From sequence record MH595538.1: a stretch of 64,000 nucleotides of DNA, one strand, 5' to 3'. Made by a program: the position numbers and the translations under genes. Of this stretch, positions 6,148 to 19,456 are shown in pieces. The first letter of the stretch is position 1, and the number at the start of each line of letters is the position of its first letter. The notes below the pieces were generated by a model that saw nothing but the letters and a program-made list of their open reading frames with translations, had not been told where the DNA came from and ran no database searches.

Positions 6148-8115
6148 ATGGGCGACCACGGATTTAATCGTAGCAACGAAGCAAACAACCCAGAAACTAA
6201 TGAGCAAGCCCAAGTAAATGCTCAAGATCAACAAAGCATGCAATCGACTGCATGGAATGCCCAACCAAGTAACCCGGAGAAGAAAATGTCCGATCAAGAT
6301 AACGACCTTACGATTCAAGACCTGTTGGCCCAGACTGGTCATTCGACTGCCCTAGGCAGCAACAGTTCTGCTGAATTGAAAGACTTCAAAGAGAACGTTG
6401 AAGAAGTTCTCAAAAATGATCGTAACGGCAAGATGCTTAAGCTTGACCTGATCACAAACAACCCTAACCTTGCTGCCCCTGGCATCAACCTATGGACCGA
6501 GAACTCTGGTGTTCTGTTCTACTTCTCTATCATTCCTGCGTGTCTGATTGCAGAAGGTCGTCTGAACAACCGCGAAGAATATCTAAACTCTGTTAAGACA
6601 GAAATCGATATGCCGGCTTCTAAAGTCTTCGATAAAGATTACTGTGCGGCAGTAGAGTCTAGCCTGCGCTCTCAAGCAGGTCCGTCTGTGAAGCAAGTAC
6701 GTAACTGTCATTACTACGTATTGCCAGCAAGCATGTCTCTGAAAGATGAGCGTACTGCTAAGATCGTCGTAGACTTGGCGTTCAACTGTATCAGCCAAAA
6801 CATCGCTCCTTCTAAGCCGCTTGCTGCTCAAGCACTGCGCTCTAAGAAGATCGAAGTAACTTTGAACCACCAAGTAAATGACAAGCGTACTTCTCAAACT
6901 ACTGACGGTACTCCGGTAGCGGCAGACGTTGTTGTTAGCATGATGGCGCAAGGCAAGACCGAAAAGAACCAAGGTCCAAACTCTGGCATGGCTCCAATCG
7001 TTCTGTCTCGTTCTTACGTGAAGCTTGATCTAATCAAGATGGATCCTCGTCTAGGCGGCATGGGTATGCATCAAATGCCTTACGGTATGATGCAAGGTCC
7101 AGTTCCAGCGTATCACCCAGTATTGATCTTGACTGATTCTGAAGGTTACGTTGAAGGTTCTTCTACTGTTGTAGAGAACCCAGGTACTTCTGCATGTGCA
7201 TTGGCATCTCTATGTCAGCTAGCCGTTGGCCGTAACTTCATGTCATTGCTTGATACACGCACAAACCACCCACGTAACGTTGGCCTACTAGGTTATGATC
7301 ATGAACCAATGAGCAATGCTCAATGGAATCCTCGTAAACTGGTTGTAGAGCGTACTAACCAAGCATCTAAAGAAGATCACCGTACCATGCAAGAAATGGG
7401 TGAGTTCTTCTTCCATCCAAACAGCATGACTGTAATGATGGATATCGGTGATGGCACACGTTCTTCTTACGCACATGCTGTATGGCTAGCGATTGCTAAT
7501 GGCGATACTGATGCGAACGAGTACATGATCTCTATCTTGGATACGTTCACTGGCGGTCACTTCGCTAAGATGTGGGCTGAGACAACCAACAATGCAATGC
7601 TGACTCTTCCAGGTCACACGCTGATTCACAACGGTACTTTCGAAGGCAGCGATGGTGCTCCTCATGACTTGCGTGAAATCGACTACTTCTACATGCTTGA
7701 AGCGTGTAAAGAGCAGTCTGCAGATCCATCAACTGGTGTTGCTCCATTCATGGCGACATTCGCACCTGGCGCTACTAACGGTGCTGATGGTCTACGTGCT
7801 CTGGATGTACGTCGTAAGGCTTACCATAACTTCGATCCAACGGTAACGATCACTGGGTTCTCTCGTCGTGTAACTATGCATCAACAGCTATCAATGGTAA
7901 TTGCTCGTGCTGTACATGCTGCTAACCTACACTTCAACCCATCTGGTCTTTACGATGAGCAGACTAACCATCAGCTTGCATACCAAGGCTTCGTACCTGG
8001 TACTGCGGTTGACCATGCAATGGTATCTGCGATTCTACAGCCTCAGTTCAACCAGAACGGTCAGAACATCTATGGTCACAACCCATACATGCCTGGCGGT
8101 GGTTGGGGTCGATAA
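6148..8115 (+). CDS. chmA: Chimallin, major phage-nucleus shell protein (phiKZ gp54-like)
   Basis: 655 aa, expected size, disordered N- and C-termini, strongly biased high-expression codons; directly upstream of nvRNAP beta'-N, the known chimallin position. Assignment rests mainly on synteny and size. Confidence 0.8.
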   Translation: MGDHGFNRSNEANNPETNEQAQVNAQDQQSMQSTAWNAQPSNPEKKMSDQDNDLTIQDLLAQTGHSTALGSNSSAELKDFKENVEEVLKNDRNGKMLKLDLITNNPNLAAPGINLWTENSGVLFYFSIIPACLIAEGRLNNREEYLNSVKTEIDMPASKVFDKDYCAAVESSLRSQAGPSVKQVRNCHYYVLPASMSLKDERTAKIVVDLAFNCISQNIAPSKPLAAQALRSKKIEVTLNHQVNDKRTSQTTDGTPVAADVVVSMMAQGKTEKNQGPNSGMAPIVLSRSYVKLDLIKMDPRLGGMGMHQMPYGMMQGPVPAYHPVLILTDSEGYVEGSSTVVENPGTSACALASLCQLAVGRNFMSLLDTRTNHPRNVGLLGYDHEPMSNAQWNPRKLVVERTNQASKEDHRTMQEMGEFFFHPNSMTVMMDIGDGTRSSYAHAVWLAIANGDTDANEYMISILDTFTGGHFAKMWAETTNNAMLTLPGHTLIHNGTFEGSDGAPHDLREIDYFYMLEACKEQSADPSTGVAPFMATFAPGATNGADGLRALDVRRKAYHNFDPTVTITGFSRRVTMHQQLSMVIARAVHAANLHFNPSGLYDEQTNHQLAYQGFVPGTAVDHAMVSAILQPQFNQNGQNIYGHNPYMPGGGWGR

Positions 8116-9794: not shown

Positions 9795-10433
9795 ATGGCC
9801 AGTTTAGATGCCCTATCGCCGCACCAGTTGAATCTGCAAGGTTCATTCGCACCGATGGGTCAACAGGCACTGCAAGCAATGCAACAAGTACAAATGGCTC
9901 AATTGCAGCAGCTACAGCAGCTAGGGATGCATTCCGCTGTAGAAATTGTACAAGGCTCCATGGAGCGTTTCCATGATTTCGCATTCGGTGAGACAGCGCG
10001 TAAGATTGAGGCTATTCGAAATAAAGCCGGTGCTTTATTCATGGCAAATGAAATCATGCCAATTACCGAAGTGGGGGTTATGCAGAATGCGCCTTTGGAT
10101 ATGGTTCAATATATCATGGCCGTACCTGAAATTGCACAGATGCACAGCAATGGAGAATTGAACGGATACTCAGGACGTTGGGACAATCCTCAGCCTAACT
10201 ACTTTGCTGAAGATAATCATACTTATCGTAATATGATGAATGGTATGATTCAAAGAGTAGAAGAGGATGATAGTGTCTACCATAAAGCAACAACTTTTGT
10301 TGAGCCTATCAAGCATCAGCATGAGTTAACATTCCGTAATCGAACTGATATCCATCAGACTATGCTTAACGTTATCAGCATGGTAGAAAATGGAGTGGTA
10401 GACCCTACGTCAGAGAACAACGATCTGATATAG
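9795..10433 (+). CDS. Conserved hypothetical protein with Q-rich N-terminus (phiKZ gp59 position)
   Basis: 212 aa, SD AAGGAG; QQALQAMQQVQMAQLQQLQQ; position by synteny only. Confidence 0.7.
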   Translation: MASLDALSPHQLNLQGSFAPMGQQALQAMQQVQMAQLQQLQQLGMHSAVEIVQGSMERFHDFAFGETARKIEAIRNKAGALFMANEIMPITEVGVMQNAPLDMVQYIMAVPEIAQMHSNGELNGYSGRWDNPQPNYFAEDNHTYRNMMNGMIQRVEEDDSVYHKATTFVEPIKHQHELTFRNRTDIHQTMLNVISMVENGVVDPTSENNDLI

Positions 10434-13300: not shown

Positions 13301-13972
13301 ATGTCCTACGGTGCAACGCCCTTAAACACCTATAAGCTCAAATTGTCCAGCGCGCCCTGGAATCCCAATGAATGGGGTAAACGTGCAACCTGGGAGTGGG
13401 ACTTGGTAAATAACAATCCGCGACTGGTCGTATGGTGTAATAACCCTAAAGAAGCAGAGAAGCTGAATGCACGAGGTAAACCTTTAGCTTCCAGTCCTAT
13501 TTCTGCCCACATGGGTCCGTTCGATCTATTTAAATTCTTTAACCTGGCTGAAAAAGTCTGTAAGTCAGAAAAGCCATTGGAAGTTAAGTTTCCTTTCTTT
13601 GGCTCTAAGTTCGTCAATGATGAAAAGGTAAAAGGCGAACGTGAATTAAAATGTACAATGTATCTTGGACGTAGTGCCGATGGCAATATCTTTATGCGAA
13701 TGGAAGATAATGTCAATGAACGTGACGTCCCTGAACTGATCTTCAAAGAAAATACCTGGGTTCCAGTTAGTCCGACCAATGGTGAATTCAGCAACGCTAA
13801 GAAGTCGACATTGGAATTTGAAGCATACATTTCAGCATTGAAAGCAATCTTCTCTCATCTCTTAGTTTCTCACTTTGTACCTGATCCTCCGCGTGATACA
13901 GGCAAAGGCGGAAAATCTGCTAAGAAAGAGATTTCTACGGACTTGCCGTCCGGCAGTTTTGATGACTTTTAA
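13301..13972 (+). CDS. Probable ChmC-like nucleic-acid-binding, nucleus-associated protein (gp67 position)
   Basis: 223 aa from ATG 13301 (SD AGGAG); beta-rich and basic with a K/D-rich tail; directly upstream of the sigma-like subunit and PicA-position gene, the reported ChmC location. Confidence 0.5.
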   Translation: MSYGATPLNTYKLKLSSAPWNPNEWGKRATWEWDLVNNNPRLVVWCNNPKEAEKLNARGKPLASSPISAHMGPFDLFKFFNLAEKVCKSEKPLEVKFPFFGSKFVNDEKVKGERELKCTMYLGRSADGNIFMRMEDNVNERDVPELIFKENTWVPVSPTNGEFSNAKKSTLEFEAYISALKAIFSHLLVSHFVPDPPRDTGKGGKSAKKEISTDLPSGSFDDF

Positions 13973-15681: not shown

Positions 15682-17211
15682 ATGCCCATAATGAACAACG
15701 TACAAATGAACCCAAACATGCCTCCGCAGCCTCAAGTTCGAATCGTCCTACGCGGCGCTAAGTTCGTTGAGATTCCTGCGACGCAGCCGTTGTTTCATCG
15801 TCCTATGCAGTTTAATGCAGATCCTAACACGATCCTCCAGTTACAAAATGTAACGCATGGTGGTTCGCTGATTAACCCTCAAGCACTAAGGGAGATTGCT
15901 AAAGAAGTAGTACGTCCATCGCCAGTGCCGGAAGGTAAGTTGATGATCGCCAACGACTGGAATATTTCGCGCTTCGCAGTGTATCTAAACTTTGAGATTC
16001 ATGCAGCCGGCCGTGTCTATCATGAGATCATTACCGGATATACTGACCATCCTGAAACCTCAATGACTGGACTTATCGATCCGGACAGTCTCATCTTCAT
16101 TAACTCTCACTTGCGTGTTAATGAGTCGATGTCTATCGGTAACGGAGCTCCAAACGGCGTGTCCAACATGGCCGTGATGTCAGATACCAATGTTATCACT
16201 CCGGTGGGAATTGTAGATCCTTCAGGCAATGTGATGACAGGTGCACATACCCAACGTCCGCAAGATGTGTTGACTGGCTTGCAGATGGGTCTTCGTGGTC
16301 CACAGCATGCTGGAACATGGGATCCTCGAGGCAATCTAGATCGTGAAGTAACCGCGGGCCTTGGTCTTCCGTCTAGTCGAAACAACCACTGTTCTACAAA
16401 CTACTTGACTCGAATCATGGTTGGTGTTCGCGATGCACGTAACTCAGTAGGTCAATTTGCATCTGGGGCTTCTGATGTGGCAACACAGCAGATGATTGCT
16501 GGTGCAGCAGCAGTGACAGCCGCTGATTGTGAATCGGATTATATTTCTCTGAGTCTATTCCAGATGCTTAAACAGAATACGTCATATGGTCAGACTGGCG
16601 CATTCATGGTCAAGGAATTATTCGCGGCCTTGGGCAATGACAATATTGACTGGAATAATGTTGCTGCTCCGATGCTGTTGCCAAAAGGTCCTGGTCAAGC
16701 TACGGTGCTTATGGATAACAGTAACGGCTGGGGTGATTACTCAAACGAAACATCAGCGGCACATCAGTTAGCACACGGCATACCTGCCCTATGTGGACGT
16801 TCGCTGCTGTCTTCCTATGCGTTCACAGCCACTGGTTCTTTCAGTCATAATATCCATACGGCGAACTATGAGCACAGTACAACGATCTTCCCGATCAGTC
16901 CTATGTTCCAAGAAAACGCCAACATGACGGTTAAGAATCTATTGGAAACAATTATCTTGCCAGAGATCTTCTATGGCATCTGTGATAACTATGTGGTGTC
17001 TGCTTCTTACACGATGTCTGGTTCCATCAATATGGACGTTCAGTTAGACGGTGGCATTAAGATTCCTTATGCAGCACCTAACTACTGTGACCATATGTCA
17101 GCACCTACGGTCGCTATTGATGATCAGACTGTTAAGAACAACGGCATGATGATCGGCAAAATCGTTGATGAAGTCTTCCAGTCTTCTGGCGCTAATGTCT
17201 TGGTAAACTAA
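15682..17211 (+). CDS. picA: PicA/Imp1-like nuclear import factor (gp69-like)
   Basis: 509 aa directly after the sigma-like gene; FHRPMQF, GYTDH and RPQDV segments; size and synteny fit gp69. Confidence 0.6.
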   Translation: MPIMNNVQMNPNMPPQPQVRIVLRGAKFVEIPATQPLFHRPMQFNADPNTILQLQNVTHGGSLINPQALREIAKEVVRPSPVPEGKLMIANDWNISRFAVYLNFEIHAAGRVYHEIITGYTDHPETSMTGLIDPDSLIFINSHLRVNESMSIGNGAPNGVSNMAVMSDTNVITPVGIVDPSGNVMTGAHTQRPQDVLTGLQMGLRGPQHAGTWDPRGNLDREVTAGLGLPSSRNNHCSTNYLTRIMVGVRDARNSVGQFASGASDVATQQMIAGAAAVTAADCESDYISLSLFQMLKQNTSYGQTGAFMVKELFAALGNDNIDWNNVAAPMLLPKGPGQATVLMDNSNGWGDYSNETSAAHQLAHGIPALCGRSLLSSYAFTATGSFSHNIHTANYEHSTTIFPISPMFQENANMTVKNLLETIILPEIFYGICDNYVVSASYTMSGSINMDVQLDGGIKIPYAAPNYCDHMSAPTVAIDDQTVKNNGMMIGKIVDEVFQSSGANVLVN

Positions 17212-17217
17212 AATAAT

Positions 17218-17239
17218 ATGCAGGCCTTAGGGCCTGCAT
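17218..17239 (+). other. Intergenic hairpin without U tract
   Basis: ATGCAGGCC-TTAG-GGCCTGCAT directly before the SD (GGAG) of the next gene. Confidence 0.6.
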
Positions 17240-17250
17240 TGGAGTTATAT

Positions 17251-19056
17251 ATGAAAATCACTAAAATCTATGAGGCAATCACCAGTGCGTTCGGTATTGT
17301 CATGGACGAGAACCGTCAGCTACACTGGACTTGCGGAATGCCTGTCAAGGACGCAAAGAGCCTTATCAAGGTTACTCTGCGTGAAAAGAAAGCAACTCTG
17401 CCGATTGTCATGCCAGATAAAAACATTCTGCGTCAAGACGAAGACTTCAAGGCCATTAAGTTCAACCCGATGGCTGAGTCATTCATGGCAGTGTCTCCTC
17501 CGGAAGTCGTACAGCGACTAGTTGTAGATGCTGGTACGCGCGTTGCCGTATCTATGTCAGGCATCATGAATGCATTACTTGAGTATTCTTTGAATCAAGA
17601 CCTGCATGCCACCGCAGATCCCGCCATCTTTGAATTGATTAAAGATGTTCCAACGATCAATAAAGATACAACGGCAAAGAACATTCATAAATATGTTACT
17701 GCCGTACTAGGTCTACATAATGGCGCAGTAGGTAAAAATGCACTGGGTCGATTCAAACTAGAAAAGGCAGTTAGTCACGAGGGCAAAACATACGCGTACG
17801 GCTGTCGCTATATTCCAGTATTTGAAAAGCACATTGGTCAGGCAAAGGTACTCGGTGTTAAGCGTCCTAACCAGAATGCTGGCTTAGTACTTGACAATAT
17901 TATCCGTCAGGTAATCAAACCAGTACTTGCCATATCAGATACTAAGACGGCTCCTAGCTTTACCGTGTTGTTGACGGCATTTGATATGATGGCCAAGCAT
18001 TTGAATCGCCTAGCAACCCTGCTTAAACTGGATGCTGATCCTCTAGCATATATTGACTTCAAAATGCCAGATATGGAAGAGATGTACAAACTCTATGTAA
18101 AAGAGATGCGCATCCCATTCCCTGGTAACGTTGGTGTATTGGATCCGGCACTTGCGGTCGCTGAAGATCAGCAGCAAGAAGAAGTTCTGGAAAATGCCGA
18201 ACCTGTAGTTGCTGCTGCGCCAGAGCCTACTGTAACTACCTCTGAACCTGTCGTTGAAACCAAACAACCTGAGAAACCTAAAGTGAACTACGATCCAAAT
18301 CAGCCTTATGCATGGCTAAACAAAAACGATACTGCTCAAGCAACAGCCGCGCCAGTGCAAAGTCCTCAGTCATCGACACCTAATACTGTTGATCTTTCTC
18401 CTAAGAAAAGCGAGACTGCGACAGCAACGCCGTCTACTGGACTGGCAGTTAAGAAGAACCCATTGAATGAGATGGTGCATCTTAAAGATGCGACAGGTCG
18501 CCCATTGGTTAATGTTGACGGGAGTCCTTTCTTGATCGACAAGAAAGACGTACCGTCTAAGCCAGTTATGCAGGAAATGAATGGACACATGCCATTGTTC
18601 AATCAGCAAACTGGTGCGCCTATGTTAATAGAAGCACCTGCTGCTAATGCTCCTGGCATGCTTCCTCCTGGAACTGTGACTAATGGCATTCCTGGTCAGC
18701 CTAATGCGACAGTAAATCCTAACGATCCGTACTCAGCTTATCGCCAGGGTAAAACTGCTCAAATGATGGCCGCGGCTAATCCGTACATGCAGCCTCCGGG
18801 TATTCCTAACGGCATGCCTTATGCTCAGCCAAATGGATATGTGCATCCAATGCCTGGACAGTACAATCCATACGCTCAACCGGCATATAATCAGGCACAG
18901 CCTTCTTACAACCAAGCAGTAAATAACTACAATCCATACGGCCAACCTGCTCAGGGACAATACAATCCATATGGACAGCCAGCCAACGGCCAGTACAATC
19001 CGTACAATCAGCCAGTGAACACAGTAGCGGTAGATCCTAACCGTCCTTATCATTAA
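17251..19056 (+). CDS. Conserved protein with prion-like Q/N/Y/P C-terminus (gp70 position)
   Basis: Start moved to ATG 17251 after GGAG; folded N-terminal half, P/E/T linker, then YNPY repeats. Confidence 0.75.
   Translation: MKITKIYEAITSAFGIVMDENRQLHWTCGMPVKDAKSLIKVTLREKKATLPIVMPDKNILRQDEDFKAIKFNPMAESFMAVSPPEVVQRLVVDAGTRVAVSMSGIMNALLEYSLNQDLHATADPAIFELIKDVPTINKDTTAKNIHKYVTAVLGLHNGAVGKNALGRFKLEKAVSHEGKTYAYGCRYIPVFEKHIGQAKVLGVKRPNQNAGLVLDNIIRQVIKPVLAISDTKTAPSFTVLLTAFDMMAKHLNRLATLLKLDADPLAYIDFKMPDMEEMYKLYVKEMRIPFPGNVGVLDPALAVAEDQQQEEVLENAEPVVAAAPEPTVTTSEPVVETKQPEKPKVNYDPNQPYAWLNKNDTAQATAAPVQSPQSSTPNTVDLSPKKSETATATPSTGLAVKKNPLNEMVHLKDATGRPLVNVDGSPFLIDKKDVPSKPVMQEMNGHMPLFNQQTGAPMLIEAPAANAPGMLPPGTVTNGIPGQPNATVNPNDPYSAYRQGKTAQMMAAANPYMQPPGIPNGMPYAQPNGYVHPMPGQYNPYAQPAYNQAQPSYNQAVNNYNPYGQPAQGQYNPYGQPANGQYNPYNQPVNTVAVDPNRPYH
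18928..19026 (+). repeat. 33-bp (11-aa) tandem coding repeat, three copies
   Basis: TACAATCC(A/G)TA(C/T) at 18928, 18961 and 18994, plus a further copy at 18862; encodes YNPYGQPAQGQ, YNPYGQPANGQ, YNPYNQPVNTV. Confidence 0.85.
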
Positions 19057-19075: not shown

Positions 19076-19105
19076 TTACACCCAGGGTTAATACCCTGGG
19101 TGTAA
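19076..19105. terminator. Bidirectional terminator between convergent genes
   Basis: TTACACCCAGGGT-TAAT-ACCCTGGGTGTAA, with an A run before and T runs after. Confidence 0.8.
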
Positions 19106-19108
19106 TCT

Positions 19109-19456
19109 TTATGTCTTTATTTTGTATCTCGACATCAAGGAGGTAACATCAGCGAGACTGGGTATTCTCAGAATAGATAACTTATCGTCATTCTCTGTAA
19201 AAGTAGTGAGTCCAGTACAGCGCATCGTCGCGTACCATAATCTAGGATCTAATCCCTGGTTAGCTAGAAGCCCATAGAAATCCCCTTGGTATTTCTTAGC
19301 GATGACTGGACCAATAGTAACTTCACTTGCGTTAGATTGCTGCATAAGCCAGTTAATGTGAGTCTCTATTATTTTTACGAAATCAGCAGAAAAGTATTCT
19401 TTGGTTTGTTCTGAGAATAAATCTCCTACTTTACTGCCCGATAATTTAAAGCCCAT
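19109..19456 (-). CDS. Small probable baseplate protein (LysM/tail-X-like)
   Basis: 115 aa; KYQGDFYGLL...LWYATMRCTGL...ILRIP pattern resembles LysM-like tail X proteins. Confidence 0.55.
   Translation of the reverse strand: MGFKLSGSKVGDLFSEQTKEYFSADFVKIIETHINWLMQQSNASEVTIGPVIAKKYQGDFYGLLANQGLDPRLWYATMRCTGLTTFTENDDKLSILRIPSLADVTSLMSRYKIKT

Follow-up and report, generated by a model that had tools for sequence, protein, structure and literature searches.

Low-complexity tails of a conserved chimallivirus nucleus-module protein, ORF81 of Vibrio phage BONAISHI and its relatives, co-vary in composition with the chimallin tail

ORF81 is a gene of the jumbo phage Vibrio phage BONAISHI (host Vibrio coralliilyticus; MH595538.1, 289 kb), and its protein ends in a long, nearly uncharged low-complexity tail. 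We analysed it within a stretch of 64,000 nucleotides, 100% identical to that record and referred to below as the window, in which each coordinate equals the MH595538.1 coordinate minus 62,000. The tail is a local flavour of a 'sticker-and-spacer' tail found throughout the protein family, with Y, M, F or W as stickers and uncharged Q/N/P/G spacers, and across the family its composition co-varies with that of the C-terminal tail of chimallin (ChmA), the nuclear shell protein. Our preferred reading, to which we give a probability of roughly 45%, is that the ORF81 tail is a cohesive, multivalent, disordered element that engages chimallin tails or the chimallin lattice.

A first-pass annotation of this DNA, made from the letters alone, had drawn attention to positions 18721-19056, which are in frame with ORF81 and encode its residues 491-601 (111 residues), describing them as almost free of charge and as containing four YNPY units, three of them in an exact 33-bp period. 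This description was accurate. The region holds five charged residues (4.5%; D492, R498, K501, D595 and R598) and none between residues 502 and 594, the longest charge-free run in the window, where the next spans 44 residues (counted over stop-to-stop frames of at least 100 amino acids). It is made up chiefly of proline (18%), asparagine, tyrosine and glutamine (14% each), alanine (12%) and glycine (8%), is devoid of phenylalanine and tryptophan, and is nearly without aliphatic residues; the low-complexity stretch as a whole begins earlier than the region first described, near residue 463. YNPY starts at residues 538, 560, 571 and 582 (window positions 18862, 18928, 18961 and 18994), the last three opening the 33-bp units with exactly the sequences first given, and NPY occurs five times in all within ORF81. 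Tandem Repeats Finder reports the repeat at 18928-19005 with a period of 33, 2.4 copies and 75% matches, and four YNPY were not reached in any of 20,000 shuffles of the tail that preserved its composition.

Between the units starting at residues 560 and 571, 9 of the 33 bases differ while 10 of the 11 residues agree; with seven synonymous codon changes against a single non-synonymous one, it is the peptide of the repeat, rather than its DNA, that has been kept. The duplication is old and the repeat peptide is under selection. Among relatives, where the first-pass annotation had proposed to look for variation in copy number, the composition is conserved and the YNPY unit is not: the two closest (37-39% identity) keep a P/Y/G/Q/A tail and the flanking motifs VNPNDPxxAYR and TVxVxP...YH, without the YNPY unit itself.

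ORF81 is the orthologue of PhiPA3 gp64, phiKZ gp70, 201phi2-1 gp126 and Goslar gp173 ('Taileboi') and belongs to PHROG 3520 by both its homologous N-terminal domain (~290 residues) and its gene position. It matches phrog_3520 over residues 12-495 (E=7e-26), and its first ~295 residues align with phiKZ gp70 (BLASTP 2e-11) and Phabio gp106 (BLASTP 3e-14). A word-based protein search with ORF81 returned two relatives only. We delimited the family by a profile search with the N-terminal domain, which yielded 1,836 clusters at E<=1e-3, 950 of them at E<=1e-30, and recovers the family member P0001 at E=2e-111. Nearly all members are 405-600 amino acids long, with the domain at the N-terminus and an extension at the C-terminus. 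The first-pass annotation had considered a tail of this kind rare in phage proteins; in ORF81's own family it is the rule. For 151 sampled members, taking the last 100 residues of each, the median number of charged residues is 5 (interquartile range 3-8), and 130 members have 10 or fewer, while 24.9% of the residues of the N-terminal domain are charged. The dominant sticker is tyrosine in 52 members, methionine in 44, phenylalanine in 19 and tryptophan in 5, with no candidate reaching 6 per 100 residues in the other 31. The tail of phiKZ gp70 is rich in M/Q/P/N/G, xLFG repeats are present in Phabio gp106 and in P0008, where SLFGQ occurs four times, other members have GW repeats, and six of the 151 have strongly charged RD/RG/DRY tails. 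Mapped onto a tree of the N-terminal domain, sticker flavour changes 68 times over 149 tips (shuffled mean 82.7; minimum possible 5). The trait that has been kept is a charge-poor, sticker-bearing, disordered tail, not a specific sequence. As their final residue, 110 of the 151 members have I, L or V, as a rule preceded by a stretch rich in G/S (...GLGLI, ...GGI, ...SLL); in the BONAISHI clade the end is ...YH. Such a C-terminus is a possible docking motif.

The first-pass annotation had likened the tail to the oligopeptide repeats of yeast Sup35 and to FET-family low-complexity domains, and had proposed phase separation or amyloid-like assembly. A self-templating cross-beta assembly like that of Sup35, built from the Y/N/Q repeats, would fit a Q+N content of 26-28%, a tyrosine content of 12-14%, the very low charge and the oligopeptide repeats, and as far as Q/N richness and scarcity of charge go, the prion likeness stands. 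It breaks down at proline, which makes up 19% of the tail and is present in every repeat; high proline disfavours cross-beta cores on prion-propensity scales. Relatives, moreover, retain the composition and not the repeat, and many have methionine or RD/RG tails that are not amyloid-prone. Given the 19% proline and the diverse tail chemistries in the family, we consider amyloid the weakest of the readings and very improbable. The FET likeness has to be given up as well, the tail having no [G/S]Y[G/S] motif and 1% serine. What survives of the original proposal is its other half: a multivalent role of the phase-separation type at the shell is reasonable because the tail is low-complexity and predicted to be disordered and because homologues of the protein are reported at the nuclear shell or within the nucleus.

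Sticky, multivalent binding at the shell is favoured over a prion because the make-up of the tail tracks that of the chimallin tail. The C-terminal segments of chimallin, CTS1 and CTS2, dock on neighbouring protomers, are required for self-assembly and provide the flexible inter-tetramer links of the chimallin lattice (PMC9365700). In BONAISHI, the last ~30 residues of chimallin (8014-8112) form an uncharged Q/N/G/Y/P tail ending in NPYMPGGGWGR; in other phages, too, chimallin tails are uncharged, with an aromatic residue or R in last place. In Phabio, chimallin and gp106 have TFGQQG in common. For a systematic comparison, we used 80 viral contigs anchored on a conserved SbcD-like gene between the chimallin and gp70-family genes; 66 complete chimallin/gp70-family pairs and five reference phages were dereplicated to 44 pairs, in which the last 40 residues of chimallin were compared with the last 100 of the gp70-family protein. 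The centred cosine of composition was 0.281 for same-phage pairs and 0.006 +/- 0.048 for permuted ones (0/5000; 44 pairs), with 0.06-0.11 for controls taken from the folded parts. Across 25 sister-pair contrasts, the differences had a mean cosine of 0.131, with a positive sign in 18; the null equalled or exceeded this mean in 63 of 10,000 cases (p ~0.006), while three controls were non-significant. Matched tails also shared 3.0 3-mers, compared with 2.03 +/- 0.23 in permuted pairs (0/300) and with 2.50 +/- 0.22 when the gp70-family protein's own tail was shuffled (4/300). The correspondence extends to the charged minority: RD/RG-rich tails accompany R-rich chimallin tails, with 6.2 versus 2.1 R in the last 40 residues. 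The BONAISHI chimallin tail exceeds each of 43 others in the number of 3-mers that it has in common with the ORF81 tail. We considered gene conversion between the two tails and rejected it: NPYM is encoded with synonymous differences in the two genes, and no extended identity is present at the DNA level.

In a clade of uncultured chimalliviruses (loci L012, L019, L020, L023-L028, L036-L038, L042, L044, L053 and L074), the uncharged tail has given way to one rich in RD/RG/DRY, with FGxG...RF or GF at its end, and the corresponding chimallin tails are R-rich and end in GFGxGxSF.

The family and its shell association were known already. According to Enustun et al., PhiPA3 gp64 has homologues in Phabio (YP_010348075.1), phiKZ (NP_803636.1) and Goslar (YP_009820858.1) (PMC10643120); gp64 is one of six nuclear-shell-localising proteins, early expressed and with no function assigned, and co-purifies with ChmB (PMC10643120, PMC11077065). 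Kokontis et al. include phiKZ gp70 in their list of nuclear proteins (bioRxiv 10.1101/2024.03.27.586873). Goslar gp173 is still directed to the nucleus after removal of residues 1-120 and has been used as a targeting tag (bioRxiv 10.64898/2026.10.01.755736). In a transposon screen of phiKZ, PHIKZ070 received one insertion with three reads in 1,302 bp, resembling essential neighbours, while dispensable genes reached thousands of reads (PMC12676376 supplement). The literature we searched, which included few subscription papers, contains no account of the family's low-complexity tail, no mention of FG-like repeats within that tail, no suggestion that it is linked to the chimallin tail, and no published function for any family member. 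As the nickname 'Taileboi' from a single preprint hints, the Goslar homologue may be the subject of unpublished work, and others may have noticed the tail.

Several points weigh against our preferred reading. The co-variation is of moderate size and was measured on related pairs, with FastTree trees built from divergent sequences; it could have arisen from a third partner in common, or from constraints that act on any disordered region near the shell. In BONAISHI taken alone, the match to the chimallin tail is mainly compositional, with six shared 3-mers (P=0.08 against shuffles), and a shared 4-mer such as NPYM arises in 20% of shuffles. phiKZ gp70 failed to pull down Imp1 in Escherichia coli (bioRxiv 10.1101/2024.03.27.586873), the scarcity of transposon insertions in PHIKZ070 may be due to a polar effect on the RNA polymerase genes that lie downstream, and the sources conflict on whether the family protein resides at the shell or inside the nucleus.

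Localisation at the shell in BONAISHI, any binding and any phase behaviour of ORF81 are what we infer from these comparisons, and the mechanism we envisage is accordingly a conditional one. The protein would be held at the shell of the phage nucleus, where its tail would make many weak cohesive contacts with itself and would also contact the similarly composed C-terminal tail of chimallin, or the docking sites of that tail. The outcome could be a condensate-like or brush-like layer at the shell, or a modulator of the lattice, and not an amyloid; the tail might thicken or plug the lattice, tune its growth or form a local phase. The passage of proteins and mRNA across the closed chimallin shell and the growth of the lattice are processes of phage nuclei that still await an explanation. 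Being conserved within the core block, early expressed, found at the shell and, in phiKZ, nearly free of transposon insertions, the family is a strong candidate for a part in them, and a tail chemistry that follows the shell protein's own tail provides a concrete, testable handle on it. If the tail does form a cohesive layer with chimallin tails, a low-complexity barrier or scaffold at a genome-compartment boundary would have been invented a second time, independently.

The tail might instead be a flexible tether, an entropic spacer of drifting composition in which short docking motifs carry the function. Candidates for such motifs in the BONAISHI clade are a pre-tail helix, VNPNDPxxAYR and the C-terminal ...YH, and elsewhere LPW, NP[YF] and the C-terminal aliphatic residue of the 110 members mentioned above, often preceded by G/S. 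The three closest sequences, in which invariant short motifs flank a poorly alignable middle, and the freely changing identity of the sticker agree with this view. Pure drift, on the other hand, would not exclude charge from ~100 residues in 130 of 151 lineages, preserve a repeat peptide across seven synonymous changes or make composition follow the chimallin tail, and we regard a tether of this kind as unlikely.

The tail is preceded by three further segments (Table 1), as defined on a full-length AlphaFold2 model built from 99 sequences and a separate model of the N-terminal domain. The latter has a mean predicted local distance difference test score (pLDDT) of 92.2 and a predicted template modelling score of 0.90, and pLDDT also exceeds 90 over residues 1-300 of the full-length model. 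Residues 296-400, which include the acidic linker, have a net charge of -9; in the small module that follows, the motif LKDAxGRP...DGSPF is invariant in the two closest relatives, and residues 439-601 are predicted to be disordered (pLDDT 32-44). A Pfam scan of ORF81 and its neighbours found no family other than RNA polymerase domains, PDB sequence searches with the protein and with the N-domain profile gave nothing meaningful, and an ESM Atlas search with ORF81 gave no usable match, the Atlas's own model being poor (pLDDT 0.34). Foldseek of the N-terminal domain against the PDB likewise returned no match at E<=0.001. The best structural matches of the N-terminal domain are the ribosome hibernation factors RaiA/HPF (Z up to 6.7, root-mean-square deviation 4.5 A over 93 residues); HPF-type entries at Z 5-6.7 number at least 14, and double-stranded RNA-binding domains follow at Z ~4. 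By the calibration of the structure-comparison tool, Z below 8 may reflect a common arrangement and lies below the reliable level, so that the RaiA/HPF likeness is a lead only.

If the lead were correct, ORF81 could be an RNA- or ribosome-linked factor whose N-terminal domain binds RNA or ribosomes at the shell and whose tail drives RNA-protein condensates. Besides the fold matches, such a role would suit the minority of family members whose tails are RG/RD-rich, a composition characteristic of low-complexity regions that bind RNA, and ChmC, which forms RNA condensates via its disordered tail (PMC11077065), is encoded three genes upstream; in BONAISHI, two genes, the nvRNAP gp68-like gene and picA, lie in between. 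Yet the Z scores are within the range of common arrangements, the Pfam and PDB searches gave no sequence match to RNA-binding families, and the BONAISHI tail lacks positive charge for binding RNA. Taken together, we find this role improbable.

A further possibility is a gate resembling that of nucleoporins, in which the tails form a selective, cohesive phase at transport sites of the shell, such as PicA puncta, and act as a permeability barrier for protein import or mRNA export, in the way of the FG domains of nuclear pores. The gene lies between picA and the genes for nvRNAP, a phage RNA polymerase, in every chimallivirus examined, and the tails combine uncharged Q/N/G/P-rich spacers with regularly placed hydrophobic stickers, a feature in common with FG nucleoporin repeat domains. 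True xLFG repeats occur in some relatives (Phabio gp106 and P0008), and P0008 gives a sub-threshold match to the Pfam family Nucleoporin_FG (PF13634; E=9.8e-4, 20.4 bits against a cut-off of 32.2 bits); no paper in the literature searched ties family proteins to FG repeats. The BONAISHI tail itself, however, has no phenylalanine, no FG and no Pfam match, and only 8 of 151 family members have at least three FG dipeptides. phiKZ gp70 did not bind Imp1/PicA in pull-downs, and no transport receptor of these phages is known. Since the defining FG features are absent in BONAISHI and there is no known link to PicA puncta, a strict nucleoporin gate stays a rival reading, and an unlikely one. Membership among the FG nucleoporins thus fails for ORF81; an FG-like mode of action is possible. 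The same doubt attaches to the boldest form of the idea, namely that ORF81 is a nucleoporin-like shell protein, conserved and probably essential, whose tail co-evolves with the chimallin tail, so that both would form a joint cohesive phase that gates traffic or tunes growth, as a convergent counterpart of the FG barrier.

The genomic setting is as the first-pass annotation had placed it, next to picA and within a block of shell and import genes: ORF80 is a PicA/Imp1 homologue (tblastn match to PHIKZ069), and the locus is the chimallivirus nucleus module. Its order is chimallin, Imp3, ChmC/Imp6, a gp68-like nvRNAP subunit, PicA, ORF81, a small reverse-strand gene and the nvRNAP beta and beta' subunits, which places ORF81 directly downstream of picA and upstream of the beta and beta' genes. 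phiKZ, Phabio, Goslar (where PicA is gp174), 201phi2-1 and one metagenome relative have this gene order in common. ORF73 is the Imp3 homologue (BLASTP 1e-12 to 201phi2-1 gp114); its N-terminus (9810-9941) is a 44-residue charge-free segment rich in Q/L/M, the second-longest such run in the window. Near the window end, from 63439 onward on the plus strand, a Q/N-rich charge-free run of 28 residues lies within a frame of 656 amino acids.

Uncharged segments also occur in other proteins of the module. The PicA homologue begins with an uncharged M/N/P/Q-rich stretch at 15682-15740 (MNNVQMNPNMPPQPQ); PicA of Pseudomonas phages has instead an uncharged Q/P-rich tail of 40-50 residues at its C-terminus, the end of which resembles the tail end of the gp70-family protein of the same phage (for example, ...DLGLL and ...GLGLI in Phabio). 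The ChmC/Imp6 homologue (13301-13972) has an acidic tip, ...SGSFDDF, comparable to ...FDEDMPSF in phiKZ gp67 and ...FDDFDSVPDFG in Phabio and similar to the acidic tip of bacterial single-stranded DNA-binding protein (SSB), and is without the long N/G-rich stretch present in Pseudomonas phages.

For the start of ORF81, a longer frame beginning at 17218 was dropped in favour of 17251, where GenBank and the homologues begin, because the homologues open with MK(I/L)T..IY and 17218-17239 is a perfect palindromic hairpin with a 9-bp stem (ATGCAGGCC-CTAA-GGCCTGCAT). The hairpin lies in the 39 bp that separate the picA stop from the ORF81 start and could be an RNA processing or attenuation site. A minus-strand frame at 18733-19053 was likewise discarded as a gene, being an unsupported, stop-free mirror of the low-complexity codons. 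Beyond the 3' end of ORF81, the convergent ORF82c (19109-19456, minus strand, 115 amino acids, phrog_3455) has counterparts following the gp70-family gene in Goslar (gp172), Phabio (gp107), 201phi2-1 (gp127) and one metagenome relative; that of phiKZ, PHIKZ070.01, has zero transposon insertions.

Table 1. Coordinates of ORF81, its segments and selected neighbouring features in the window.
Feature	Position	Strand	Basis or remark
Chimallin ChmA, ORF71	6148..8115	+	phrog_4795 'nuclear shell protein', E=1.6e-36
ChmC/Imp6 homologue, ORF78	13301..13972	+	BLASTP 1e-7 to phiKZ gp67; phrog_3284
PicA/Imp1 homologue, ORF80	15691..17211	+	tblastn: PHIKZ069 and 111 other chimallivirus records; phrog_3141, E=2e-48
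ORF81	17251..19056	+	GenBank coding sequence AXH70822.1, 601 amino acids
Folded N-terminal domain, residues 1-315	17251..18195	+	AlphaFold2; last helix is residues 299-314
Acidic A/P/T/V-rich disordered linker, residues ~316-400	18196..18450	+	pLDDT <50
Small conserved module, residues ~401-438	18451..18564	+	motif LKDAxGRP...DGSPF; pLDDT 62-75; short helix and strands
Low-complexity tail, residues 463-601	18637..19053	+	P 19%, N 14%, A 12%, Q 12%, Y 12%, G 9%; 5 charged residues
Charge-free run, 93 residues (502-594)	18754..19032	+	D, E, K and R all absent
NPYM, residues 510-513	18778..18789	+	same four residues occur in the BONAISHI chimallin C-terminal tail
First YNPY unit, YNPYAQPAYNQ, residues 538-548	18862..18894	+	sequence
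Three tandem 33-bp units, YNPYGQPAQGQ, YNPYGQPANGQ, YNPYNQPVNTV, residues 560-592	18928..19026	+	
C-terminal end, ...AVDPNRPYH	19027..19053	+	TVxVxP...YH-COOH invariant in two closest relatives
Terminator-like hairpin, strong, 13-bp stem	19076..19105	+	3' of ORF81; shared with convergent ORF82c

Compared with known systems, ORF81 is closest to its own family, whose members have the same N-terminal domain, the same layout of folded domain, acidic linker and uncharged low-complexity tail, and the same position after picA and ahead of the small reverse-strand gene and nvRNAP beta. BONAISHI and its two metagenome relatives differ from the rest as a long-branched clade that is ~150 residues longer and has the extra module at residues 401-438, a Tyr/Asn/Pro flavour, with YNPY repeats in BONAISHI, and ...YH in place of the usual aliphatic end. 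With cohesive FG domains of the GLFG type (PF13634), ORF81 shares uncharged Q/N/G-rich spacers, spaced hydrophobic stickers and a place in a compartment-boundary protein; unlike them, its tail has tyrosine as the sticker, no phenylalanine, high proline and no Pfam match, and receptors and a channel lining are not known. The low-complexity domains of Sup35 N and FUS resemble the tail in combining tyrosine with Q/N/G, near-zero charge, short degenerate repeats and predicted disorder, and differ from it in their [G/S]Y[G/S] units, of which the tail has none, and in its 1% serine and 19% proline. The linker of bacterial SSB, which is disordered, uncharged and G/N/Q-rich, can also be likened to the ORF81 tail. 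Within the same gene block, the N/G-rich tail of ChmC/Imp6 is similarly disordered and uncharged, belongs to a nucleus-associated protein and is needed for condensate formation in vitro (PMC11077065); it is the shorter of the two tails, carries an acidic tip and acts jointly with an RNA-binding Whirly domain, whereas no nucleic-acid-binding domain was detected in ORF81. The chimallin segments CTS1 and CTS2 (PMC9365700), finally, form an uncharged, G/N/Q-rich, aromatic-bearing and disordered tail of a shell protein, like that of ORF81, and the gp70-family tail matches the chimallin tail of the same phage in composition and short words; the chimallin tail is short (~40 residues) with defined docking segments, while that of ORF81 is ~140 residues long and repetitive.

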